NCBI GenBank assembly: GCA_977017575.1
Contig: CDRNVI010000014.1
Coordinates: 1 to 64,000 of the forward strand
Length of the DNA stretch: 64,000 nt
Reading direction: 5' to 3'
Source of the DNA: Paramoeba atlantica
Taxonomy: Eukaryota > Protista > Discosea
Part shown: positions 1 through 14,608 of the stretch, one piece after another
Layout: the number at the start of each line of letters is the position of its first letter
How positions within the stretch are numbered: position 1 is the first letter of the stretch
Translations under genes and position numbers: made by a program
The notes under the pieces: model-generated
Told to the model about the DNA's origin: nothing
What the model saw: only the letters and a program-made list of their open reading frames with translations
The model's database searches: none

Positions 1-1
1 A

Positions 2-88
2 CGTCAATTGCCAACTGCTGATGTATTAAATGCACACGCACAATTATTTGCAGTTGGACAACAATTTGAATTGCTGAAGAATTCTTGA
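2..88 (+). CDS. fmt: 3' end of methionyl-tRNA formyltransferase (partial, runs off window start)
   Basis: Frame from base 2 reads RQLPTADVLNAHAQLFAVGQQFELLKNS*, resembling the Fmt C-terminus. Its TGA (86-88) overlaps the rsmB ATG (88-90), matching the conserved def-fmt-rsmB order. Confidence 0.7.
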   Translation, partial: RQLPTADVLNAHAQLFAVGQQFELLKNS

Positions 89-1413
89 TGATAATAAATA
101 CGCGACTGATTGCTGCACGTATATTAGTTCAAGTGCAACAAGGTAAATCATTAAATAATGCGATAACAACGGTGATAGCTGCCTATTCACAAATAAATCG
201 TGCCGATCGCAGCTTGGTGCAAGAATTAAGTTACGGTGTATTGCGTTGGCATTTACAGCTTGCGTATCTAGCAACACAATTATTAACAAAATCGTTAAAG
301 TCGCGTGATCAAGACGTTTACTACTTAATATTAATTGGATTGTATCAATTAGGCTATCTTAATCAGCCAGATTATGCAGTGATCAATGAAACGGTTAAGG
401 CAGCGACATTACTCAAAAAACCATGGGCAACTGGGTTAATTAATGCAGTATTGCGACGCGTACAACGCCAAGGACAACAGTGGGTAACTCAAACGATTAC
501 TCAAGCTGATCGAACAGTAATGACAGCACATCCTAAATGGTTGCTGGATGCATTAACAGCTGCATGGCCAGCACATATCGACGATATCATTGCAGCTAAT
601 AATGCTAAACCACCATTGGTGTTGCGGATAAACCGTTTACAAATAACGCGCGATGCGTATTTACAACAATTGACTGAATGTAATATTGCAGTAGCCCCGC
701 AAGTGCACTGTGAGGATGGTGTTGTGTTAACTCAAACATTACCTATAGAAACTTTACCGGGTTATGCTGATGGATTATTTGCTGTGCAAGATGGGGCAGC
801 GCAGTTGGCAGCGACGTTATTAAAATTAGATAGCGCCACATCGATGCTGGATGCATGTGCGGCTCCAGGCGGCAAAACAGCACATATGTTGATGATGGCA
901 CCACCATCAACACGTTGTGTTGCTTGGGATAAGGCGCCTGCACGGTTAGCTATGGTTAAGGAGAACTTACAACGATTGCAATTAGTTGATGAGAATCGCA
1001 TTCAATTGCAGGTGATGGATGCGATTAATCCTCAGCAACCCGATCAACTATTTGATCGAATTTTAGTAGATGCACCGTGTTCGGCAACGGGGATCATTCG
1101 TCGTCATCCGGATATTAAACTACATCGTCAACCAACTGATATTGAAGCGCTTACTGCAATCCAATTACGATTATTACAGTCGTTGTGGTCATTATTATTG
1201 CCAGGAGGGTATTTATTGTATGCAACATGTTCTGTATTGCCGCAAGAAAATGTAAATGTTGTACAATCGTTTTTGCAAGATACACAAGATGCGGTGCATG
1301 TGCCGATTGATGTCACATGGGGAATCGCGCAATCCCTAGGACGACAGATTTTGCCAGGTATGCATGATATGGATGGATTTTATTATGCATTATTAACCAA
1401 ACAAGAGGAATGA
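88..1413 (+). CDS. rsmB: 16S rRNA m5C967 methyltransferase RsmB (Sun), intact
   Basis: N-terminal NusB-like region (ELSYGVLR, LINAVLR), SAM motif LDACAAPGGKT, and DAPCSATG and YATCS catalytic cysteines. ATG at 88 preferred over the track's TTG at 85. Confidence 0.97.
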   Translation: MIINTRLIAARILVQVQQGKSLNNAITTVIAAYSQINRADRSLVQELSYGVLRWHLQLAYLATQLLTKSLKSRDQDVYYLILIGLYQLGYLNQPDYAVINETVKAATLLKKPWATGLINAVLRRVQRQGQQWVTQTITQADRTVMTAHPKWLLDALTAAWPAHIDDIIAANNAKPPLVLRINRLQITRDAYLQQLTECNIAVAPQVHCEDGVVLTQTLPIETLPGYADGLFAVQDGAAQLAATLLKLDSATSMLDACAAPGGKTAHMLMMAPPSTRCVAWDKAPARLAMVKENLQRLQLVDENRIQLQVMDAINPQQPDQLFDRILVDAPCSATGIIRRHPDIKLHRQPTDIEALTAIQLRLLQSLWSLLLPGGYLLYATCSVLPQENVNVVQSFLQDTQDAVHVPIDVTWGIAQSLGRQILPGMHDMDGFYYALLTKQEE

Positions 1414-1418
1414 TAATC

Positions 1419-1738
1419 ATGCTAAAAAATATTGCGTTAACGTTTATTGTTATATTGCTGTGTTTGTTGATTGGTAGTTATTGGTTTTTTGCATCGCCCG
1501 TAGCGTTTGCTGCTGGTGTTTGGGGGTGATTGTCGGTTCTGTAGTATTGTTTTGCATTGCTGCGTTACTATTTTTTGTATTAACTGGCATTGGTATTATT
1601 ATTTTAGGCATGTCCTTTTTTATTTGGACGATAATCTTATTGATTTTATTTCCATTCTTATTGCCACTCTTATTACCATTATTGATCGTGTTAATTTTTA
1701 TTTCATTGGTGCGCAAACGACAGTTGCAGAAAAAGTAA
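1419..1738 (+). CDS. Small hydrophobic membrane protein (~106 aa), split by a frameshift at a G5 run (1522-1526)
   Basis: ATG 1419 reads MLKNIALTFIVILLCLLIGSYWFFASPVAFAAGVWG*. Adding one G to the G5 run joins it to the hydrophobic 1481-1738 frame ending RKRQLQKK*. Confidence 0.7.
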
Positions 1739-1752
1739 TAACAATATGCCAG

Positions 1753-2421
1753 TTAATCAAGACAAGCTAATAGCCAATGTCGTAATTGTTTAATTTCATC
1801 GTGACATACTTCATGTGCGATAGGATATGTATTCCACACGACATCATATTTCAATTTTAATAAGTGTTGGTAGCTAGATTTGCCGAATAACAGCGGCACA
1901 ATCGGATCAACGCTACCATGTGCCATAAAAATTGGTGTCAGCTGATTAGTATCTTGATGACCATCATCAATGTATTTTGCTAAGGGTAAATAACTGGATA
2001 ATGCAATTAGTCCAGCTAATGGTTTTGGATAACATAACCCACTATACAGTGCAGTTGCACCGCCTTGTGAAAAGCCACCGATAATAATGCGTTTTGCGGT
2101 GATCCCACTTTGTTGCTGCTGTTTAATCAGTGCGTGGCATTGAGTACAAGCTTGCTTAATTCCAGTTTCATCTTCTGGTGAGTCAATGGTTAATCCTAAA
2201 ATATCAAACCAACCACGCATTGGCATGCCACCGTTTAGGGTAATTGGGCGTACGGGAGCATGTGGAAATATAAAACGAATCGTGTGGTTGTTGGGTAATG
2301 CTAATTCATTCGGTAGTGTACTGAAGTTATGGCCATCAGCACCTAAGCCATGTAGCCAAATTACACACGCATCAGCAGTATTTGGTGGTTCTTGTGTGAT
2401 ATATTCTAGTGGTTGTTGCAT
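1753..2421 (-). CDS. Alpha/beta-hydrolase, phospholipase/carboxylesterase (EstB/acyl-protein thioesterase type)
   Basis: WLHGLGADG, nucleophile GFSQG, AHGSVDPIVP and the C-terminal His (AHEV). ATG 2421 (MQQPLEY) is the likely start; alternatives are 2436 and 2445. Confidence 0.93.
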   Translation of the reverse strand: MQQPLEYITQEPPNTADACVIWLHGLGADGHNFSTLPNELALPNNHTIRFIFPHAPVRPITLNGGMPMRGWFDILGLTIDSPEDETGIKQACTQCHALIKQQQQSGITAKRIIIGGFSQGGATALYSGLCYPKPLAGLIALSSYLPLAKYIDDGHQDTNQLTPIFMAHGSVDPIVPLLFGKSSYQHLLKLKYDVVWNTYPIAHEVCHDEIKQLRHWLLACLD

Positions 2422-2533
2422 AATTAAAGAACTCATTAATATCAAAGTTAATAGTGATCGATTAAATATTATTTAATAATTAACCAATTAAATAAAACAA
2501 CGTTATCAACTAGATTACGTTGCATAGTGTAAA

Positions 2534-2570
2534 AAAGTTCGTCCCTGGACTGAATCCAGGGACGAACTTT
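2534..2570. repeat. Perfect 16-bp inverted repeat with 5-nt loop in a divergent intergenic region
   Basis: AAAGTTCGTCCCTGGA (2534-2549), loop CTGAA, TCCAGGGACGAACTTT (2555-2570). Confidence 0.9.
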
Positions 2571-2643
2571 CTTAAATGTAAGTTGCTGCTATCATCAGCA
2601 CTCAGTATACTGACACACAATTTCATAACAGTGAAGCATTGAC

Positions 2644-2823
2644 ATGATAAATTATCAACAACACAAACGTTGGAACTACTTGACACTAATATTGGTTTGT
2701 TTGCTAAGTATCAGTTGTTTATTGAACTTAACAGGGTGTGGCATGAATGGGAAATTGTATCTACCTGATAACGATCATCCGGCACCAACCAAACCCGATC
2801 CGAATGAACCGACTTGGTTTTGA
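2644..2823 (+). CDS. lptM: Small outer-membrane lipoprotein LptM/YifL/LppL (59 aa; absent from ORF track)
   Basis: MINYQQHKRWNYLTLILVCLLSISCLLNLTGCGMNGKLYLPDNDHPAPTKPDPNEPTWF*. Lipobox LTGC is followed by the family motif CGxxGxLYLP, and the gene lies directly upstream of lysA as in many gammaproteobacteria. Confidence 0.85.
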   Translation: MINYQQHKRWNYLTLILVCLLSISCLLNLTGCGMNGKLYLPDNDHPAPTKPDPNEPTWF

Positions 2824-2850
2824 GTAAATAACATAGCACAGAGGTAAACA

Positions 2851-4104
2851 ATGGATCATTTTAATTATCATGATGGACAACTCTATGCCGAGAATGTTGC
2901 TGTCATTGATATTATCGCTGAATACGGTACACCTTGTTATATTTATTCACGTGCGACCATCGAACGTCATTGGCAAGTGATGAATGATGTGTGTGGACAA
3001 TGGCCACATCAAATTTGTTATGCAGTCAAAGCCAACGATAATTTGGCGGTGTTAGATGTGCTAACTCGGTTAGGATCGGGTTTTGATCTGGTCTCACAAG
3101 GTGAACTAGAACGCGTATTACACGTTGGTGGTGATCCAAACAAGATAGTATTTTCCGGCGTAGGCAAACTAACCACAGAAATACAACGTGCCTTACAGGT
3201 TGGGATCCATTGCTTTAATATTGAATCGGCAGATGAATTAACTCGGATTCAGCAGTGTGCACAATCATTAAATATAATGGCACCAATTGCGGTGCGGATT
3301 AACCCTAATGTTGATGCAAATACCCATCCTTATATTGCAACCGGTCTGCGTGATAGTAAGTTTGGTGTCGCTCCTGATGTGGCTAGACAGTTATATCAAC
3401 GCGCGCAACAACTCTCTCATATCGATATTGTTGGGATAACCTGTCATATTGGTTCGCAGTTAGCCTCATTAACCCCATTTACCGATGCAATGCGTGAGTT
3501 ATTAACGTTTGTTGATGAATTGCAAGGCATGGGGATCACCTTACAACATATCGATATGGGAGGTGGTTTGGGTGTGCCGTATCGTCAAGATGAACAATTG
3601 CCAACGCCCGCAGAATATACACAAGCATTGATCGATCTATTAGCTGATCGTCAATTAACATTACTATTAGAACCAGGTCGGTTGATCATGGCCAATGCGG
3701 GCATTTTAGTCAGTCGTGTAGAATACATTAAAACAACTGATAATAAACGATTTGCGATTATTGATGCTGGGATGAATGATTTATTACGCCCAGCATTGTA
3801 TCAAGCATGGCATGATGTGATCCCGGTGTAGCAATTAGAACGCGAGCAACACACTTATGATATTGTTGGACCGGTGTGTGAAACATCTGATTGTTTTGCG
3901 ACTAAACGTGAATTAGCAATTGCCACAGATGATTATATTGCGATCCGCAGTGTCGGTGCTTATGGTGCATGCATGAGTTCACAATACAATGCCAGAGTGC
4001 GTGCTGCAGAAGTGATGGTTGATGACAAACAAGCGCATTTGATCCGTCGGCGTGAGACTTGGGATGATCTAATGCGGCATGAAACGCCGCTGCCTGCACG
4101 ATGA
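2851..4104 (+). pseudogene. lysA: Diaminopimelate decarboxylase with one in-frame TAG at 3829-3831
   Basis: YAVKAN (PLP lysine), HIGSQ, DMGGG and EPGR motifs. The same frame continues past the stop: DVIPV*QLEREQHTYDIVGPVCETSD...GAYGACMSSQYNAR. Confidence 0.92.
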
Positions 4105-5790
4105 CAACGACGATATCTCACGACTTAACCCACATCAGTGTTAGTACCTTGCGTGGTGTTGGTAAACAAACGATAACCCGTTTACAACAAGCTGGATTGC
4201 ATACATTATTAGATTTAATCTTACATTTACCAATGCGTTACCAAGATCGCACCCGAGTTATTCCGATTGCTGAGTTGATTCCAGGACAATTTGCTGTGAT
4301 CGAAGGCCGTGTATTGTCAGTGCGTCGCACCTTTGGCAAGAAGCCCAGTTGGCATTGCCAAATTGAAGATGAAACCGACAAGGTGACTGCCATTTTTTTT
4401 CATTTGCATTCAGGATTTAACTCAGCAATTAACTAACGGTGCCTTGATACGTTGCTATGCAGATGTTGCTCAAGATAAACATAAACAAGCGTGTATTTTA
4501 TTACACCCTGCCTGTGATATTGCTACCGATCAATTGCCACCGTTAGCCACTGAGTTAACTCCAATCTATCCGCTTACTGAAGGATTAGGTCAAACACGCT
4601 TGCGTGGTTTTATTCAACAGGCAATCACGATATTAAAGTCGAGTCATGAACATGCACTGGAATTATTGCCAGATGAATTACGTCAACAATATCAATGGCC
4701 AGACTTTGTGACAGCGATTAACGCGTTACATCAACCATCAGTTGATGATGATATTCAAGCGATTTTAAATAACCAACATCCAGCGCAGCAACGATTAATT
4801 GTCGAAGAGTTATTAGCTTATCAATTACGATTGCGCGCCTATCGATTACGAATTCGTCAAGCAGCCAGCTATGTGTTAAATGACGATCAAACGGTATTAA
4901 AGCGTTTCATTAAAACATTGCCCTTTGCGTTAACCGAACCACAACAACATGCTATTGATGCAATTGTTGCTGATATTACTAGCAAAACTCCGATGATGCG
5001 TTTGCTACAAGGTGATGTTGGTTCAGGTAAAACCATTGTGGCCGCGTGTGGATTATTGCAAACGGCAATCAGTGGTTATCAAGCAGCATTAATGGCACCA
5101 ACTGAGTTATTAGCTGAGCAATTGTATCAGCAATGTTATGCATGGTTTTCACCATTGAATATCAATGTGGTGTGTTTAACTGGAAAACTAACCACACAAT
5201 CACGTAATCAAGTGTTAGCCTCTATTGCAGAAGGCAGTGCTCAAATTATTGTGGGAACACATGCCCTGTTTCAACAACAAGTCACCTTTGCCAAATTGGC
5301 GTTTATTTGCATTGATGAACAACATCGTTTTGGGGTGAAGCAACGATTAGCCTTATATGACAAAGGCAAAACGGGACACGTTAAACCACATCAATTAGTG
5401 ATGAGTGCTACACCCATACCGCGTACATTAGCCATGCTGCATTATGCTGATTTAGATTGTTCGATTTTAGATGCATTGCCACCGGCACGATTGCCAATTA
5501 AAACCCTTGTTTTAGCAAATACACGTCGTGATGAAGTCATTCAACGTGTTAACAAATTGTGTGCACAAGGCCAACAAGTGTATTGGGTGTGTCCATTGAT
5601 TGATGAATCAGAGACATTGCAATGTGAGACCGTTGATATGATTGCCAACACATTGCAAACACAATTACCAGCATTGCGTGTTGCGGTTGTTCATGGTCGT
5701 ATTGATAATGATGAAAAATCTCAAATCATGTATGCCTTTCAGCAAGGTGATATCGATATTTTAGTGGCAACAACGGTGATTGAAGTGGGT
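4101..5790 (+). pseudogene. recG: ATP-dependent DNA helicase RecG, +1 frameshift between ~4393 and 4433, truncated at ~5790
   Basis: DLILHLPMRYQDRT, QGDVGSGKT, DEQHRFGV, MSATPIPRTL and VATTVIEVG motifs. The conserved continuation (VDVPNA...QLRGRVGR) is missing and replaced by ARY*. Confidence 0.93.
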
Positions 5791-6112
5791 GCAAGATACT
5801 GAATAGTAAATAGGAGGGGGGACGGTAATATTCCTGGTAGGAATAATACGAGGGTATAGGAATATTAACCCGGAGTGGTTTAATTTTTTTAGGATACATT
5901 TCGACTGCATTTCATCAAAATTTCATTTCACTAAAAGTAACGAGAACGTGTACATCTCAAAATTCTGAACTGATAAGAGGGTGTATAAAATTGCTTAACT
6001 CCTGAATATCTAGGAGTGATCTTTTTCGGGGCACTGCATTTTTACTTTGAGCCGCACCCGCTCGCACCGATCCCGGTTCACCCCTCTTAGTCGTTTCATT
6101 AGTGTATATTGT

Positions 6113-6559
6113 ATGTCTCGTAAGTTTAAGCCTTCGCGCGCTAAGCTAATTAGGTGCAGCACAGCGCGCATGGTTCTCGTGAATGCATCTGTGAAGCCTA
6201 CTACCTTAAAGACTTATGAGCGAGTTTTGAATCCCCTTGAAAGCTTCCTAAAGAGGGTGAGAAAAGTCAAGAGTATTAAAATCGAGACGTGTTCAGAGGA
6301 AGAGTTCATGTCATTTCTTGTGGAATGGTACAATCAAGGCATGTGCTCACCTGCAGGTATTTGGAGTGCACTAATATTTGTGAAACGACGTGCAGGACAC
6401 GAATGCTCGTGGCTGCTTTCTGACATATTAAAAAAGATGCTCAAGGGAGCTGGAAGTAGAGGAACACATGAAATTCGTGGAGCAGAAATTACCCCTCTTA
6501 GCTTTTATTTCGGGCATCAATTTTTGGGTTCAAAAATAGGAAGAATTGGACACAAATGA
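6113..6559 (+). mobile_element. Fragment of a tyrosine recombinase (N-terminal core-binding region) of a DIRS/VIPER-type element
   Basis: NASVKPTTLKTYERVLNPLESFL...FMSFLVEW...WSALIF...ILKKMLKG resembles the N-terminal region of DIRS-group recombinases. The catalytic half is absent. Confidence 0.55.
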
Positions 6560-6880
6560 ATTCTCTGTGTATTTAAGGCGTGTTGGTGAGCTCAAGAGTG
6601 TTTAAAAAGTGAAACAAAAAAACATAGTTTTTTATAGTTTTAAAAAACGTTTATAGTAACTATATAGTACTATATTGATAGTTTTATAGTTTCTGCGAAC
6701 CCTGAAAAAAAACGTTTTAATGAATACAACATAAAGAGGTTCATAAATTGAACATAAAGACTCTTCATACACATAAAGAGTGTACACATCAAGAGTGTAG
6801 ATCAGATAGATATGAAATATTGGATGCACTGTAAGTTTTATTTATAAGTTTAAATTTTCCCTAATTTCGAAACGTTTGAT

Positions 6881-7495
6881 TTAAGTTTTTAGTATTCCAT
6901 TACTCACCGTAACTCGCGTCCATTCAACATTATAGCACAAATTCTTTAGTACGCCATCTACATCCAAGTAACCTTCCAAGTTTATGTTACGATTCAAATA
7001 TAACTCTCTCAAAGTTAGCGGGAGTGAAGAAAAATCAACACAGCCACCAAATTCGTTGTGACCGAATGCGATTTGCTTTAGCATGGGCGGCAAATTACAC
7101 AGGTTTGGGGTTCCCGTAAATTGGTTGCTAGATAAAGTAATAGTTTTTAATGTTCTAGGAAAAGCTTCAAAAGGAAAATTTCCCGAAAACTCATTGTCAT
7201 GAAGAAGTAGAGCCACCAATGTGACGGGCAAATATTTCAGATTCAGTTCACCACGAAGATTTAAATACGACCAATCTATATAGACCACCTTGCCAGCTTT
7301 ATCGCATTCGACACCATCCCATTCATCCGCTGGTGTATTCGTGCTCCAGGTAGAGTCAAGATTCTCTACCTTTTGTAAGAGCCGCATTAAATCATATTCC
7401 GCGGGTAGCGACGCTCCAGTAACCTTACCTGGACGTACAGTCGGTTGCGCATCTGATGCCAGGGATGTGCGTACCAGAGACATGAAAAATAGCAT
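6881..7495 (-). CDS. LRR protein (204 aa), N-cap plus 23-aa LRRs
   Basis: LPAEYDL...W...W.GV.C cap followed by LPxxLxxLxLxxNxFxG repeats. Confidence 0.9.
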   Translation of the reverse strand: MLFFMSLVRTSLASDAQPTVRPGKVTGASLPAEYDLMRLLQKVENLDSTWSTNTPADEWDGVECDKAGKVVYIDWSYLNLRGELNLKYLPVTLVALLLHDNEFSGNFPFEAFPRTLKTITLSSNQFTGTPNLCNLPPMLKQIAFGHNEFGGCVDFSSLPLTLRELYLNRNINLEGYLDVDGVLKNLCYNVEWTRVTVSNGILKT

Positions 7496-8104
7496 ATAGA
7501 ATAGCTTGTAGAAAACACAAAGAATAAAAAGAGATACTGCGTTTTACGACAAACATTACTATTACGCCTAAAACACTGCCAGAGAATGGAAAAGTCTGTG
7601 GAAAAGAATCAAGATCGAATACATTTTTAGTGTGATCTCGGATACTAAGATTAGTAGTGTATGAGAATCAGTGATACAGATAACGAAAAAGGTAGCAAAA
7701 ACATTCATTTACAACGAAAAACACTTAATTGCAATCTGAAATAACATTTATTAGAATTAATAGGACCAAAAACAGTTCCGAAACGTTCACTTAAAATATT
7801 CAAAAAACGCTAGAAGAAAACACCGATTTTAAACGAACTCCGTAAACAGAACAAGGATTTCTCAATTAAAAGTAGACAATATTCATTCATTCGAATAATA
7901 AGTAATAGAAACCAGGGTGATCTACCTCCAAAACGCAAACAACATTTAAAACGAACTGTAAAAATACCAGTAGGATAAGTGACTGTCGTAACAAGAACAG
8001 AAATTTAAGAAAAAAATGCCTTAAAATCTATCCCAACCCCTTTTCACCACATTACATCAACCTTCCCCCCTCATTCTTTCCCCTCTCCCCTGGCTGTTAC
8101 TCAT

Positions 8105-9153
8105 TTACGATTTCAACAGCCCATTTTCCACCGCGCACTGCTTCACCACCTCCGTGCAGTACGGCGCCAACTCCTCCCGCTCCATCGAGTTCAAATCCTT
8201 GAACCCGCTGATTTTGCCGAAACAAAACAGCCGGGCGGGGGAGATACTCGGGGAGAGGGACCCCGCGCGGGTCTGGGACCCTTTCCGTTTCCGTGGTGGG
8301 GTCATGTCCGGGGGGACGGACCCGATCACAGCCCCGGTGGTCATGTCCTGGGCCGCACACACACACTCGAAGGGCTCATCCATGGCGTACTCCGTGGTGA
8401 GGTAGTTGAAACTCAACACCTCCCCGGCGGGAATCGCCGCAATCGTAATCACCCGAAGCACATAGGGGTGGGCGACCATAAAATCTTTGGTCTCATTTCT
8501 AGGCGTCCCGTTTTCGTTCTTCTCCCCCCCTCTTGGGCAGAACTTTCCTCTTTTTTCTGTTCCGGAATCTCACACTCCGGTTCCCCTTTTAATTTTTCAA
8601 TCACCACCTTGGTGTTGGGGCGGCAACTGTGGGCCAGGAACTCGGATCCCCCATAGGGGTTCATGTGGAGCTCCTTGGTGACTTGAATGGTAAATACCGT
8701 CGCGTAGGGGAGGATGGGTCCACGGAGCGTGTAGATCTCCTCGTTCTCCGCGAGATCCACCGCAGCGACCGGAGAGATCCCCATGGGACCTCGACGAAGC
8801 GCGACTTTGTCGGGGTACTTGTTAAAATTCGCCAGGGAGATTTTGGTTTGGCTTTTAGGGGTTGTTTCGCAGGTTGTGTTGTTCTCCTCGGCGGATTTGG
8901 CCATCTTACGTGCAGGGCTTTTACATTCTGTATTTTTTAAAGGAGACTCGGAGGTTTCGGCGGAGGTGTCTACTTTCTCTTCTTCAGGGGTCTCGTTCGC
9001 CATGGAGGCAATCTCACGACGGAGCTCGGTGGAGCAGTAGGGGATAACCGCAATGCGAAAGTCGCAGGAGAGATTGAGGAATTTTTCCACGGTCATGGAT
9101 TGTGCCTCCTTGAGGAGTTCATGGGGGGTAGGTAGGGTCTCGGTAGAGGTCAT
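8105..9153 (-). CDS. SET-domain protein with post-SET cysteines (~349 aa), frameshifted at a 7-nt G run (8524-8530)
   Basis: FLAHSCRPN (NHSC-like) is in one frame; LRVITIAAIPAGEVLSFNYLTTE...FECVC...CFGKISGF is in the other. One extra G fuses them (QEGG-EKNENGTPRNETKDFMVAHPY). Confidence 0.85.
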
Positions 9154-9514
9154 GGAGTTGAAGGGAAGAGTAGCAAGAAAACGGTACTAAAAATAATAAA
9201 AAAGAATTCGAATAGGTATAAAACATGGAAATGAAGGAAAGAGACGAAATACCGTGAGACGCTTCTGGTTCATATCAAATCTGCATGAAATTTCCGTACT
9301 GTGTGAAAGAGTTTTAGATTAATCAAGAGAACAAAGAACTAATTTAGCTCTAAGTAGATGTACTCTAAGTAGTTCTCAATAGATTAAGCACAGTATTAAG
9401 TGCTACTAGAAAATATATTTCATGCATACGTAGGATATTACGAAGAATACGTGCATGAAGATCAAGATTGCCAACACGAAGTTTCAATTTGGAAGCGGTT
9501 CACATGGTCCCAGT

Positions 9515-12500
9515 TCAATAATAGCATGCGTGCGGTCCCAGAATTACGTTCTTCGCATCGGGATTCTCAAAAAGAGGATACAACATGGCGCCGAGTTCTA
9601 AAACAGGTTTCGGAACACTTGGAAGACCCTCTATCCAGGAATCGTCCCCCTCTTCCTCGTCCCCCTCTTCTTCATCTTCCTCATCCCCTTCCTCTTCCCA
9701 TTCTCCGTCCTCTTCCCATTCTCCGTCCTCTTCCCACTCTCTTCTCTCCTCTTTTTTCCTCAAAGGTTTTTTGAACGTCTTTTTGAACGTGTCCCAAAGA
9801 GCACCGTAATCCATCAAAGGAAGAGCTTGCTTGGGCTGCTCCTCCTGGGAACCCACCGCACTCTCTGAGCACGGCGCCTTCATCCCCATCGCTTGAAAAC
9901 ACGCCGCAAGGTTGGGCAAGCGCAACGTCATGCGCTTCTCCTTCTGCCCCCCACAAAAGTGAGTACCCCTCGCGTACGAACCCGAGGTCACGCTCTGACA
10001 ACCCCTCGCCGCACAACGCAGCACCCCCCCCCTCCTGGCCTGCATAAACCGGTTTAACACCTCCAGGGAGGCCCTCACCCGCCGTCGCACCCGTCCCATC
10101 CCCCCCACCATCGGGGCCATCACCGCCCCCAGCGCGAGGACCACCCGCAGCCCATTCATCACCATCACCCCCCACAGGGGGAGGTACACATGGTGGAACC
10201 CGTGACCCTGGCCCGGGACCCGGGGGTCCCCGTACCCCCAGTGTCGCACAAACCCCGAAGGGTCGAGCCCCGCGCCCCACACCGTGGCCCCCCGGGCCTG
10301 GGGCCCGCAACACTGCGACACCATAAAGCACAGGAACTCCTCCCCGGTCTCCACCCCCGGCAGCAGGGCGCTGGTGACCACATAGGACGTGTGGGCCTCG
10401 CGACCCACCGCCTGGGTCTGGAGCGCGTACCCGTACCGGGGCGGGGCGGCCCGGGGAAAGGGGGAGGGAAATGGAGGGTAGGCCAGGCCCCGGGGGCTGG
10501 CCCCGTGGCCGTGGCCCCCTCGGTGGGGCCCACCGTAGGGTGAGCTGTCGTAGTACCCCTCCACGACACTCCAGCTGTCGAGAAACACACGGGCGTCCCC
10601 GTGTGCGGGACTCCTTTTGTGTGGCTTTTGTTTTCCTCCCACGCATCTGTTGTTTTCGTTGTTTTCATCTTGTGAAAAAGAAGAGGACGAAAACAAGACC
10701 CCGGCATTGGGGTTGGTTAACAGTTGATACAAAACTTTCGGTTTGGAGGAGAAGCCGAGAAAGTGGCGATCCTGGATGTGAGCGAACTCGGATTGGAGTT
10801 TGCCTTTTTCTTTACGGTAGAGCCGTCGGAGGAGGTCGACGGGGAGGGGGAAGCGTCGAAGGAGGGGGAGAGGGGGGGAGGGGGTGGGGTTCGTTTGAGT
10901 GGGTTGGGGATCGATTTCGTCATCCTCATCGTCATCACTGTAGCCGCAGAGCTCCGTGCCGTAGAATTTTCGGCGGGAAGAGGAACAGAAACCACGAGAG
11001 AAGGAGGAGGAGGAGGAGGAAGAAAAGGTGGCTAAGGAAGGATTCGAGTTAGCGTCGGGGTCGTTGTCATTAGGATTTGATCCTAGAGTGGTCTCTCTAT
11101 GGGGTGCGGGGGTGTCACAAAAGGTACAGACAAGGGGAGGAGGGATTTCGACCGTGCTCAAGCTTTCGCACATTTCGGACTCCTCTTCTGAGGAGGAGTA
11201 TTCCTCTTCTGAATCGTCGTTCTCCTTCTCCACATTTGTTTCCAAATACCCATCGTGATAGAATTGGTCATTGACGAACTCCACTTTGAGATGACTGCCG
11301 AACTGCGATTTGGTAACCTGACGCACAGGTCCCAATTCCTCAAAATGGGCCCGAACACTCGCTTCTGTGCTGTTTTTTACAATAAGAGAGGTGGAACCGA
11401 ATTCCACTTCCTGGGGGTTGAGCTCGCGGTGTGCCTCGGATTCTCGTGGGGGCTGCATCACTAAGACATGAGACTGACTTGCGAGGAGTATAAACAGAGA
11501 CAGACGACGCGGCCGGAAAACATTCGGGTTGATTTCTCGACGCATGCGAAGGAGACGGGTGGTTTCGGCTGCCGTCAGGGAGGTTCCACAACAGGGCAGT
11601 TTCTCCATCACCTCGAGGAGCTGGCGATCTCGCACACTGAGCAATGTGGGTATAAGCTTGAGCAGTTTCTGTGCAATTCCGCGGACCTCTGTCACAAAGG
11701 ACCGTACCCGGGCGTAGATCAGACTGTGTATTCGACAAAACTCACGCAGTGCGTTCGACTGCCCGGCTTCTCTTGCCTGGGCTCGGTCCATTCCGAGATA
11801 GGTGCTTGCTTCCAGGTAAATCACCAGAAAGGCCACAATATCATTAGCAAAGCCTGCTGACAGAGAGCGCACCCCTTCAACGGTCTGTGCAAACGCCGCG
11901 TGATAATCTGCATTGTTATCGTAAAACACCCGCATAGGATATTTAAACAGCGGTTTTGATAGTGAAAGCCCACAGACCACTACCAGGGTCTCGGGGACAA
12001 TCCCTAAATACGCTGCCGAAACGAGCCACCCGCTGTGAGTGACACTTAATGGAAGTTGGCTCACCACCACCCCAAGTGGGCGAACTTCATACCCCGGAGG
12101 GTTGCCGAGTAGCTGGGCCTGTATCAGTCCCCGCAGCGCGTCCTCGACCGCACCCGTGGCCGGAGCCTCGATAAAACGTGACATTACCTCCTGAGGAGTC
12201 CCAAAGGCTCTCAGGTGGACCCGAGCACGAAGCACGCTGTATTCCAGCGGGTAGAGCTCTGAGGGCTCTACCGGAGGCATCACGACGTCGTGGAGACGTT
12301 CGCTGTATAAACGACACACGATCCCCGTCTGGGTACGTCCCGCTCGCCCAGCACGTTGACGGGCGGCGCCCTGGGAACACCACACGGTTTGAAGCCGTGC
12401 CATTTTTTGCCGCTCCGCGTAGCACACGCGTCGACTAAGCCCGCTGTCCAGCACAATGTGGACATCGGGAATAGTGAGACTTGTCTCCGCGAGATTCGTT

Positions 12501-14608
12501 GCTAAAATTACCCGACACACGGGAGAACTTGTCGAGGAGAGCCGTCGGGTGGCCTTTTGCTGCTCCTCCAGCGGCACCGTGGAGTGGAGCAAAAAGAAGG
12601 AAAGCTCCAACTCGGCGTCGGGGGTCTCCGCCCAACGCTGTGCGGCACGTTGTTGTAGAACCTCACGCTCGGAGTACAGCAGTTCCATCTCCTGTAGCCC
12701 CGGGAGGAACACGAGCACACATCCCATGGGTTTACAAACCGCTGGGATAAGGCAAAGCAACAGGCGATGCATCGCGTCCAGCCCTGGAGGCTCACGGGGG
12801 AGACGAACCAGGCGAGAGGCCCAGTTCTGGATCGCCTCTGTGCCCTCCCGCGTGAGCCCGGAGGTGATCTCCAACGGGAGTGTCTCGAGATAATACTCGA
12901 CGACCGGAAACCGGCGAGTGCCGACTTGTAGACACGGCGGGGGTCCGCCTTGAACCGAGTGAAAGTACGTCACAAAACGCTCCGTCTCCAGCGTTGCGGA
13001 CATGATGATAAGCCTTTTAGCGTTTGTAGGGACACCCGAAGGCTGTGGGTCCAACGTGTCATGGGGGGGTCCACCGTGCCACCCTTTTACCGCGGCCGCC
13101 TCCCGTTCCCGGGCCAGCTTAAGCTTCACCACCAACAGGGTCATATCCTCCTCCAACCCGCGCTCGTGGGCCTCGTCAAACACCAGGTGGGTGAGACGAT
13201 CCCACAGACGGGTGTGATGCAGCAACGACTGCAGGAGGTACCCTGTGGTGACGAACACAATTCGTGTGTGTGGCCCCCCGACACTGTCGTTGGCAATCGC
13301 ATACCCCACCGTGCGCCCCAGCGGCTCCCCAAGGAGAGCCGCGACACGCTGGGCCAGGGAGATGGCGGCCAAGCGTCGGGGCTGGGTCACGACCAAATAG
13401 GGCGTGTTAGCCGTAGGAGTCGTAGTACGTGGGCTAAGGGGGTTTACCCCCTTAGTCGTACTCGGACGACTCACCCCCTCCGAAAAGGTCGTCTCGCCCC
13501 TCACAGGGGATGGGGGCTCCCTTCCCGTGTGGGGGGAGATTTCGGTAAGATTTCGCCACAGTGCGAGAGGGACTTGGGTACTTTTCCCACAGCCCGTTTC
13601 CCCGACCACACAGGTTACGGGGTTGTGCTGGACCGTGTGGACCAGTGTGGGGAGGTAGGGGTCGATGGGGAGAGGGTCGTGGGGGAGGGGGGTGGGGGGA
13701 GGTAGCCTCCCACGGTGGGGGGAGGGGGGTGGGGGTGGAGGTTGGGGGGGTGTGGAGTAGAAGGCGGATTGAAGGCTCGCCGCGAGGGTTTTGGAGGTTG
13801 CGGGGTTTTCGGAGTTCGCGGGAGCGAGAGGGTTGCGGGACGCCGGAGAGGAGACTTGGAGGGATGAGAAAAGGGAGGTTAGTCCGTCGGTTGCTGAAGA
13901 TGAATTTTGGTTAACCCTGTTAGCTTGCGTCGAGGTTGGTGAAGAACCTTCGGGAGGGTTGATTGAATTAAAACTTGCTCCGCTGTGGTTGTAAGAAAAA
14001 TGGGGTGTAAACGGATGGGCTGGTGCCACGACGGAAGATAGTGAAAAGGGATTGTCACAAATTGAATTGTCTTGCGGAACGGATGGAGATCCATGTGTGA
14101 TATGACTAGTGTAAGGAGCATTATCGGTGCAAGAAACAGGAAGAGCGACATTCGGATTGACAGCACGGATTTGCTTTTGCGAGCCATTGAAGAAAGAAAT
14201 TGGTTGCGATGGGGAGTCGGTTTGAATACCTGCGAAGTCGGAAAAGACCTCTTGTGAGGCCGAATATTGACTTTTCACATTATATTCACGAAATGTGTTA
14301 CTACTTTGCATCGACGATGTGCGAGAAGATGCGCTGACGGTCGATGGAGTAAAAACTTCTTTCGGCTGCGATGTGCTCCAATTCGACATGCTTTTTGTTC
14401 CGGTAAAGACAAATGGTAAATTGCCTGGATGCGACAAAAACTCACAGGAACGGTTGTCCTTTTGGTGGTGTTCTTCCTCACCATCTGTATTGTAAACCTG
14501 CACAAAGGGGTTGTTTTCCTTAAACTTTTCGAAAGGATATTCGGCTTGAGAAGTCGACAAGTTAAATTCCTTTGTAGCTGAATGATTTCTTTCCTTCTTT
14601 GAAGACAT
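9515..14608 (-). CDS. DEAH/RHA-family RNA helicase (1697 aa), intron-less, with low-complexity termini
   Basis: GETGCGKST, DEAH, SAT, FLPG, ATNLAETSLTIPDV and QRAGRAGR motifs, then an HA2-like region and an acidic tail. Confidence 0.95.
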   Translation of the reverse strand: MSSKKERNHSATKEFNLSTSQAEYPFEKFKENNPFVQVYNTDGEEEHHQKDNRSCEFLSHPGNLPFVFTGTKSMSNWSTSQPKEVFTPSTVSASSRTSSMQSSNTFREYNVKSQYSASQEVFSDFAGIQTDSPSQPISFFNGSQKQIRAVNPNVALPVSCTDNAPYTSHITHGSPSVPQDNSICDNPFSLSSVVAPAHPFTPHFSYNHSGASFNSINPPEGSSPTSTQANRVNQNSSSATDGLTSLFSSLQVSSPASRNPLAPANSENPATSKTLAASLQSAFYSTPPQPPPPPPSPHRGRLPPPTPLPHDPLPIDPYLPTLVHTVQHNPVTCVVGETGCGKSTQVPLALWRNLTEISPHTGREPPSPVRGETTFSEGVSRPSTTKGVNPLSPRTTTPTANTPYLVVTQPRRLAAISLAQRVAALLGEPLGRTVGYAIANDSVGGPHTRIVFVTTGYLLQSLLHHTRLWDRLTHLVFDEAHERGLEEDMTLLVVKLKLAREREAAAVKGWHGGPPHDTLDPQPSGVPTNAKRLIIMSATLETERFVTYFHSVQGGPPPCLQVGTRRFPVVEYYLETLPLEITSGLTREGTEAIQNWASRLVRLPREPPGLDAMHRLLLCLIPAVCKPMGCVLVFLPGLQEMELLYSEREVLQQRAAQRWAETPDAELELSFFLLHSTVPLEEQQKATRRLSSTSSPVCRVILATNLAETSLTIPDVHIVLDSGLSRRVCYAERQKMARLQTVWCSQGAARQRAGRAGRTQTGIVCRLYSERLHDVVMPPVEPSELYPLEYSVLRARVHLRAFGTPQEVMSRFIEAPATGAVEDALRGLIQAQLLGNPPGYEVRPLGVVVSQLPLSVTHSGWLVSAAYLGIVPETLVVVCGLSLSKPLFKYPMRVFYDNNADYHAAFAQTVEGVRSLSAGFANDIVAFLVIYLEASTYLGMDRAQAREAGQSNALREFCRIHSLIYARVRSFVTEVRGIAQKLLKLIPTLLSVRDRQLLEVMEKLPCCGTSLTAAETTRLLRMRREINPNVFRPRRLSLFILLASQSHVLVMQPPRESEAHRELNPQEVEFGSTSLIVKNSTEASVRAHFEELGPVRQVTKSQFGSHLKVEFVNDQFYHDGYLETNVEKENDDSEEEYSSSEEESEMCESLSTVEIPPPLVCTFCDTPAPHRETTLGSNPNDNDPDANSNPSLATFSSSSSSSFSRGFCSSSRRKFYGTELCGYSDDDEDDEIDPQPTQTNPTPSPPLPLLRRFPLPVDLLRRLYRKEKGKLQSEFAHIQDRHFLGFSSKPKVLYQLLTNPNAGVLFSSSSFSQDENNENNRCVGGKQKPHKRSPAHGDARVFLDSWSVVEGYYDSSPYGGPHRGGHGHGASPRGLAYPPFPSPFPRAAPPRYGYALQTQAVGREAHTSYVVTSALLPGVETGEEFLCFMVSQCCGPQARGATVWGAGLDPSGFVRHWGYGDPRVPGQGHGFHHVYLPLWGVMVMNGLRVVLALGAVMAPMVGGMGRVRRRVRASLEVLNRFMQARRGGVLRCAARGCQSVTSGSYARGTHFCGGQKEKRMTLRLPNLAACFQAMGMKAPCSESAVGSQEEQPKQALPLMDYGALWDTFKKTFKKPLRKKEERREWEEDGEWEEDGEWEEEGDEEDEEEGDEEEGDDSWIEGLPSVPKPVLELGAMLYPLFENPDAKNVILGPHACYY

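Follow-up and report, generated by a model that had tools for sequence, protein, structure and literature searches.

Probable chimeric-read origin of a bacterial tip on a Paramoeba atlantica contig

Bacterial and eukaryotic genes around the junction

The window analyzed here comprises the first 64,000 nucleotides of a Paramoeba atlantica contig (C14:1-64000), and a search of the genome delineates the bacterial DNA as the first 5790 bases of this contig. Because the window begins at the contig start, the bacterial DNA (1-5790, plus strand) is a contig tip, with no host sequence on its 5' side and a single junction; it corresponds to approximately positions 961169-966958 of the bacterial chromosome OZ220716.1, with one substitution and one inserted base. 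The sequence-only reading described this part of the window as operon-packed bacterial DNA, which is borne out by the calls of rsmB, an esterase, an LptM-like lipoprotein, lysA, and recG. The rsmB gene, encoding the 16S rRNA m5C967 methyltransferase (85-1413, plus strand; NF008149, 492 bits, over the cut-off), is intact and 100% identical to its copy in OZ220716.1. It is followed by a pair of small hydrophobic ORFs (1419-1738, plus strand) that are apparently split at a run of five G (1522-1526), with a stop at 1527-1529, and gave no match in a Pfam search. The intact esterase gene (1753-2445, minus strand) encodes a hydrolase of the phospholipase/carboxylesterase family (Abhydrolase_2, PF02230, E = 3.4e-57). 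Between this gene and the next lies an inverted repeat (2530-2574; opposite-strand self-match, 89%) that, judging by its sequence, looks like a bidirectional terminator hairpin. The small lipoprotein encoded at 2644-2823 (plus strand) contains a lipobox (...LTGC) and scores 20.9 bits with NF047847, below the cut-off of 27.7; of the three genes previously listed as intact, rsmB and the esterase stand as such, and the third, taken for lptM, can be called only LptM-like. The tip is completed by lysA, encoding diaminopimelate decarboxylase (2851-4104, plus strand), with an in-frame TAG at 3829-3831, and recG (4101-5790, plus strand), which carries an extra T at 4416 and is cut at approximately position 555 of the 692 positions of the profile.

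The abrupt stop at position 5790, directly behind the recG codons that spell ATTVIEVG, is confirmed, and unrelated eukaryotic repeat DNA comes next. The probably chimeric junction (5790-5791) reads ...GAAGTGGGT, then G, then CAAGATACT..., with at most one base (G5791) common to both partners, and it lies mid-gene in recG and mid-repeat on the eukaryotic side.

The eukaryotic DNA at 5791-13303 (plus strand) matches the reverse strand of another contig of the assembly, C73 (positions 9002-1488), with 100% identity in the genome search and 99.97% identity with two gaps in a local BLAST comparison, an overlap of 7.5 kb. Within it, a repeat-borne ORF of 149 amino acids (6110-6556, plus strand) has paralogs elsewhere in the genome that are 30-52% identical, longer ones among them. 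This ORF had been read as a tyrosine-recombinase relic, an assignment that found no Pfam match at E ≤ 0.01 and no support from NCBIfam, the sole hint being the SAM-like integrase N-terminal domain PF13495 (E = 0.1). Another ORF (204 amino acids; 6881-7495, minus strand) belongs to a family that is multi-copy in this genome and shows only faint leucine-rich-repeat/FNIP hints. An ORF for a eukaryotic DEAD/DEAH-type helicase (1697 amino acids; 9515-14608, minus strand) is intact across 13303/13304, the point where C73 turns into foreign bacterial DNA.

The unbroken host site and the free bacterial chromosome

C73 crosses the junction point with unbroken eukaryotic sequence and extends for 2.6 kb more at 98.5% identity, collinear with a third contig, C23. 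The C23 copy is 97-98.5% identical to 5791-13303, collinear with it, and likewise unbroken at the junction point. Thus, uninterrupted copies of the same host site are present in the same assembly, in C73 (100%) and in C23 (~98%).

The counterpart of the bacterial part, OZ220716.1, is a separately assembled chromosome of 2,447,832 bases, filed as "MAG: Gammaproteobacteria bacterium". It carries a Dot/Icm-type DotI/IcmL gene; a search of it with PF03219 (ATP/ADP translocase) gave no match, and the control genomes were blank as well. Positions 1-5790 of the contig are 99.97% identical to this chromosome, with only two differences in 5790 bases: position 3829 is T in the contig and C in OZ220716.1 (TAG versus CAG in lysA), and the extra T at 4416 in recG, which converts GGATT to GGATTT, is absent from OZ220716.1. 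A separate bacterial copy with both genes intact, the search for which had been suggested as a check, is therefore found: lysA (418 amino acids) and recG (704 amino acids) are undamaged in OZ220716.1, and recG runs on past the cut point, reading TCAATGTACCCAATGCC... from 5791. The sequence-only reading counted three damaged genes; the TAG in lysA and the +1 in recG hold relative to this chromosome, whereas the presumed -1 in the membrane-protein ORF drops out, the break at the run of five G being the same in OZ220716.1 and hence not damage specific to the contig copy.

The same comparison was made with public data, namely Logan assembled contigs of four runs (X1-X4) from one study, in which the source sample may be included. 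In each run, a contig reaches 5791, and all contigs that extend this far then continue as recG of OZ220716.1; none of the public contigs bridges 5790/5791, with the proviso that these are assembled contigs and not raw reads, so that rare variants are dropped. All listed contigs over the bacterial part in the four runs have C at 3829 and lack the extra T at 4416; in X3, two contigs without this T account for 15,554 of the depth of 25,097 at 4416. The coverage step suggested as a further check is seen as well, with a 30- to 500-fold drop at 5790 in the public-run contigs: from ~10,979 to 22-30 in X1, from 65 to 2 in X2, and from 1,104 to 0-5 in X4. The gammaproteobacterium is abundant in all four runs, at 30-500x the host depth. 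In the sequence-only reading, a lack of reads across 5790, a step in coverage, and an intact bacterial copy elsewhere were named as outcomes that would count against a real integration; the public contigs come close to this outcome, which is suggestive but not final.

Foreign tips at other contig ends

C73 itself starts with DNA of a different bacterium (positions 1-1487), which encodes a frameshifted GSDH, a MurQ-like SIS protein, and the C-terminal part of a DeoR protein cut at the junction. The join lies within the eukaryotic helicase gene whose copy in C14 is whole, and a search of the assembly for a second copy of C73:1-1487 returned only the tip itself.

Sampling of 117 kb of OZ220716.1 yielded three further tips, 99.94-100% identical to it and each at a contig end. 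One (C108:23725-29143) runs to the contig end at 29,143 and meets its partner within a mitochondrial-type SSU rRNA gene; for another (C57:29590-33160), the position at the contig end is deduced from the clipped locus; and the third (C23:1-3278) lies directly at the contig start. Together, the tips differ from the bacterial chromosome at 5 of 18,058 bases (~Q35). The segments of OZ220716.1 at 100-120, 1300-1320, and 2300-2320 kb have no identical match in the assembly; for the former two, small contigs of the assembly match at 69-91% identity, and for the last one, there is no match at E ≤ 1e-50. Some small contigs of the assembly appear to come from other bacteria. Foreign tips recur at unrelated contig ends, including one with a mitochondrial-type partner and one with a second bacterium.

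Origin of the tip and consequences for the assembly

In all likelihood, positions 1-5790 represent a chimeric long read that was kept as a contig tip, that is, an assembly artifact and not gene transfer. A single hybrid long molecule or read would have formed during library preparation or amplification, fusing a 5.8 kb piece of bacterial chromosome to protist DNA end to end, and could have been the outermost read at a thinly covered protist locus. The neighboring contig C73 would end in a separate hybrid read with DNA of a different bacterium; because the C73/C14 overlap is flanked by foreign overhangs on both sides, we propose that the assembler left the contigs unmerged and kept both tips. 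Decontamination may then have taken out the wholly bacterial contigs, with the bacterium filed as OZ220716.1, but not the tips on eukaryotic contigs. The two differences in 5790 bases match the rate across the tips, a level of error to be expected in a single read.

The sequence-only reading offered either a decaying integration or a chimeric assembly, leaning slightly toward decay on the strength of the lysA substitution; the contigs, the depth, and the intact bacterial copy favor the chimera and not the lean. Neither T3829 nor the extra T in recG occurs in any of the four runs or in OZ220716.1, so that the argument from decay fails. The TAG in lysA and the +1 in recG would, by these sequence comparisons, be single-read errors or rare variants. 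In lysA, the substitution creates a stop codon, an outcome that random substitutions seldom have, and this counts against an artifact.

If symbiont DNA had entered a protist chromosome in a real, fixed, and very recent integration and were now starting to decay, this would account for the presence of the junction in the deposited assembly and for the two inactivating changes that set the contig copy apart from the free bacterium. The idea gains some plausibility from the abundance of this bacterium in four samples and its DotI/IcmL gene, which make a close physical association, one that might promote transfer, plausible. We nevertheless consider such an integration extremely improbable: the unbroken site is found in the same assembly, there is only one junction on a contig that starts in bacterial DNA, the junction and both supposed decay changes are missing from the public-run contigs, further contig ends show the same pattern, one of them with a join in a mitochondrial rRNA gene and one with a second bacterial species, and 99.97% identity to the donor leaves no time for decay. 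The terminal position alone does not discriminate, because a real insert identical to a far more common free chromosome would also tend to break contigs within the inserted DNA. The junctions are blunt, the partners having 0-1 base of homology, which suits repair by end joining no less than ligation in the library, and many of them involve the same abundant bacterium. Both points could also fit a subclonal or somatic ligation of DNA from an intracellular bacterium into broken nuclear and mitochondrial host DNA, captured by sequencing of single molecules. The present data do not separate such an event from a library chimera, but the tip of an unrelated bacterium at C73:1-1487 fits abundance-driven in vitro joining better than symbiont-specific biology, and a mitochondrial rRNA gene broken by such a join does not make for a viable genome; we therefore regard this possibility as very unlikely. 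The broader proposition that the tips reflect a real and ongoing flow of DNA from symbiont to host, in which pieces of a Legionellales-like intracellular bacterium's genome are frequently and subclonally inserted into nuclear and mitochondrial host DNA, appears just as improbable. The combination of a multi-copy repeat on the eukaryotic side with the extreme bacterial depth, both of which strain assembly graphs, might suggest that the assembler wrongly linked bacterial and protist paths through common sequence, with no hybrid molecule involved. However, no more than one base is common to the partners, which leaves no overlap to join through, and the genome search with the bacterial segment found no second similar sequence in the genome. 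An overlap-driven mis-join was rejected on the former ground, an end-to-end join being likely instead, and a mis-join without any hybrid molecule accordingly has very little probability.

Nuclear integration of endosymbiont DNA is known, for instance, from Wolbachia-to-host transfers. The C14 tip resembles these cases in that genes of a probably host-associated bacterium lie beside a host repeat and show apparent inactivating changes. Unlike such integrations, it has neither a second junction nor read support as judged from the public-run contigs, an empty site of 100% identity occurs within this assembly, the bacterial DNA has not diverged from the donor beyond the level of read error, and equivalent joins involve mitochondrial DNA and, in one case, a second bacterium. 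The likeness to tips derived from chimeric reads is closer: the foreign DNA is terminal and nearly identical to an abundant co-sequenced genome, the breakpoints lack homology and fall within genes of either partner, a number of contig ends show the pattern with varying partners, and the base quality is that of a single read. The difference is that support of this tip by exactly one read is inferred. Chimeric alignment is reported for ~0.8% of bulk HiFi reads, and for ~60% once the DNA has undergone multiple displacement amplification (bioRxiv 10.64898/2026.06.11.730069).

The C14 tip provides no evidence of gene transfer, and its value is that of a quality warning for the assembly rather than of a biological finding. 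The assembly consists of 45.7 Mb in 248 contigs, several of which have foreign bacterial tips at their ends. The three additional tips come from 4.8% of the bacterial chromosome, the part that was sampled, and extrapolate to ~60 (range about 13-180). Any claim of a bacterial gene in a protist that is made near a contig end in this assembly should first be compared with OZ220716.1. After trimming of both tips, C73 (reverse strand) and C14 could be joined via their 7.5 kb overlap.

The bacterial end of contig C14 and its donor

The window is the very start of contig C14 in the Paramoeba atlantica assembly (45.7 Mb, 248 contigs), and its first 5,790 bases are tightly packed bacterial DNA, that is, a foreign tip on the contig with one junction only. 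This segment encompasses rsmB (85-1413; NCBIfam NF008149, 492 bits), two small hydrophobic ORFs (1419-1738), a minus-strand Abhydrolase_2 esterase (1753-2445), a hairpin (2530-2574), an LptM-like lipoprotein with a score under the family cut-off (2644-2823), lysA (2851-4104), and recG, which starts at 4101 and is broken off at 5790 just behind its ...ATTVIEVG codons, around position 555 of the 692 in the RecG profile. The junction within recG reported by the sequence-only reading is present, with unrelated DNA from 5791 on, as are two of the lesions it listed, the in-frame TAG in lysA (3829-3831) and the +1 frame change in recG near 4416.

A search with RsmB retrieved OZ220716.1 (“MAG: Gammaproteobacteria bacterium ... 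chromosome: 1”, 2,447,832 bases; hereafter, the MAG) with a protein identity of 100%, followed by relatives from Legionellales, Coxiellaceae and unclassified gammaproteobacterial MAGs at only 43-47%. Window 1-5790 differs from the MAG at exactly two sites (a third apparent gap is a slide of the aligner across the junction and was left out of the count): T for C at 3829, which changes CAG to TAG in lysA, and an additional T in recG at 4416 (GGATT to GGATTT). The MAG encodes intact open frames for both genes, lysA of 418 aa (TIGR01048, 510 bits) and recG of 704 aa (NF008163, 891 bits), the latter reading on past the breakpoint as GTC AAT GTA CCC AAT GCC.... The third lesion, a -1 frameshift in a membrane protein gene, did not stand as damage to the window copy: the G5 run (1522-1526) at which the very hydrophobic small ORF is apparently split is the same in the MAG and hence was not acquired by the window copy. 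The split ORF could be a genuine pseudogene or a pair of short genes, or else reflect a homopolymer error common to both assemblies.

The MAG also encodes a type IVB secretion protein, DotI/IcmL (382884-383426; PF11393, E = 2.9e-52), and its RsmB is closest to those of Legionellales-type MAGs; judging from these genes and from its abundance in the public runs described below, a host-associated, Legionellales-like lifestyle can reasonably be proposed for this bacterium. A search for an ATP/ADP translocase (PF03219) gave no match in the MAG and none in the control genomes either.

The uninterrupted site and the public sequencing runs

The DNA beginning at 5791 bears no relation to recG, and portions of it have matches at many sites in the assembly. 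Window 5791-13303 matches the opposite strand of C73 (C73:9002-1488) at 100% identity, and contig C73 runs past the junction point into eukaryotic repeat (...TTTTCGCGCCGGGGG|GCAAGATACT...). A third copy, C23:318000-336312, represents the other haplotype or else a segmental duplicate; its collinearity with C14 extends from 5787 to at least 21350 (97-98.5% identity), and that with C73 for 2.6 kb more past the junction point (98.5%). Given that C73 and C23 are continuous across this point, the uninterrupted site is found twice in one assembly, once at 100% identity.

The ORF at 6110-6556, previously taken for a tyrosine-recombinase relic, produced no family match at E ≤ 0.01, the only hint being a SAM-like integrase N-terminal domain (E = 0.1), and this assignment is a tentative one. 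The ORF is repeat-borne: C73 and C23 carry copies that match it fully or at 99%, and paralogs elsewhere in the genome stand at 30-52%. Two further segments are multi-copy eukaryotic elements, one of about 225 bases (6482-6705) repeated on many contigs at 87-92% identity, the other (6886-7491) an ORF family with faint leucine-rich-repeat hints and 76-82% copies on C14, C23 and C73.

One search identified four public runs (X1-X4), all from one study, that hold this stretch, and their assembled contigs were placed on window 2900-8800. In every contig listed over the bacterial part, position 3829 is C and the extra T at 4416 is absent; in all four runs, a contig reaching 5791 goes on with TCAATGTACCCAATGCCACATTAATGGTGA, as MAG recG does. 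Sequence depth drops at the junction from ~10,979 to 22-30 in X1, from 65 to ~2 in X2, from ~10^4-10^5 to ~50 in X3 and from 1,104 to 0-5 in X4; in each of the four samples the bacterium is abundant, with 30-500 times the depth of the protist. No junction-bridging record is among those listed for the four runs, which may include the source sample and whose contigs drop rare variants. Together with the depth step and the continuation of recG elsewhere, this is what the sequence-only reading had named as evidence against a real integration.

Other foreign tips in the assembly

Comparison of 117 kb (4.8%) of the MAG with the protist assembly revealed three more MAG segments, all of them terminal on their contigs: C108:23725-29143, comprising the final 5,419 of 29,143 bases (99.98% identity; MAG 954228-948811); C57:29590-33160, a presumed end where the locus stops (99.94%; MAG about 604030-607599); and C23:1-3278 (100%; MAG about 1916315-1919592). 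Extrapolation from these three hits, with the starting tip excluded, gives about 60 tips (Poisson range about 13-180). Outside its tip, C108 resembles a mitochondrial genome, with a bacterial-type LSU rRNA and a mostly clustered set of 19 tRNA genes; its SSU rRNA gene is truncated exactly at the start of the bacterial DNA (junction 23724/23725), an arrangement that cannot be a working genome. The MAG sequence adjoining the end of this tip (about 946317-948804) is a tandem array of ~420-base units, 74-89% alike, which may be a large repetitive gene and is also represented by the last 414 bases of C108.

The four tips together show 5 differences from the MAG in 18,058 bases, or about Q35, a level typical of individual accurate long reads and not of a consensus sequence. 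The lysA and recG lesions fit this rate; in coding DNA every indel shifts the frame, and a substitution that creates a stop codon, although uncommon as a single event, carries no weight when there is one instance.

A second chimeric tip, C73:1-1487, comes from a bacterium other than the MAG organism and encodes a fragment of a glucose/sorbosone dehydrogenase whose reading frame is broken (PF07995), a MurQ-like SIS protein (PF22645, PF01380) and the C-terminal part of a DeoR regulator (PF00455) cut at 1487. The join (1487/1488) lies inside a eukaryotic DEAD/DEAH-type helicase gene that C14 carries across this point as an unbroken open frame of 1697 aa (window 9515-14608, minus strand).

Origin of the tips

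Taken together, these observations make it highly probable that the bacterial tip on C14 is an assembly artefact and not a feature of the organism. Between the integration and the chimera initially proposed, the chimera is favored, whereas incipient decay is not, given the uninterrupted site at 100% identity, the single junction, its absence from the run contigs, and lesions within the tip difference rate. A fixed recent integration of bacterial DNA into a protist chromosome, confronted with that same site and with a lone junction lacking read support in the contigs of four runs, appears extremely unlikely. Joining of bacterial and host DNA in vivo in a subclone would formally look no different from a library chimera; nevertheless, the DNA of a second bacterium on C73 and the break within a mitochondrial rRNA gene on C108 both point to abundance-driven joining in vitro, and we consider the subclonal origin very unlikely. 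Much the same low probability attaches to a pure graph mis-join: the partners have at most 1 base in common at the junction (G5791), which leaves no overlap for such an error.

Under the artefact explanation, one bacterium's DNA would dominate the sample, and library preparation or amplification would generate hybrid molecules among abundant DNAs (bacterium, mitochondrion, nuclear repeats). Where host coverage is thin, a single hybrid read could become the last read of a contig, with its foreign half as the tip, and decontamination would have removed whole bacterial contigs and left the tips. In a recent study, chimeric alignments were seen for about 0.8% of reads in bulk HiFi data and about 60% of reads derived from MDA (bioRxiv 10.64898/2026.06.11.730069).

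The overlap between C73 (reversed) and C14 comprises 7,513 identical bases, with a foreign overhang beyond it on each contig. String-graph assemblers usually discard overlaps with overhangs on both sides; if this applies here, it would account for C73 and C14 being left as two contigs with both tips kept. Once the tips are trimmed, the two should join into one sequence, closing the gap.

The practical value of these findings is a warning on bacterial tips and leftover bacterial contigs in the P. atlantica assembly. Six small contigs (C109, C126, C131, C197, C216 and C230; for example, C197:3-1201 and C230:25795-29197) show 69-91% identity to MAG genes and are probably whole contigs of other bacteria.
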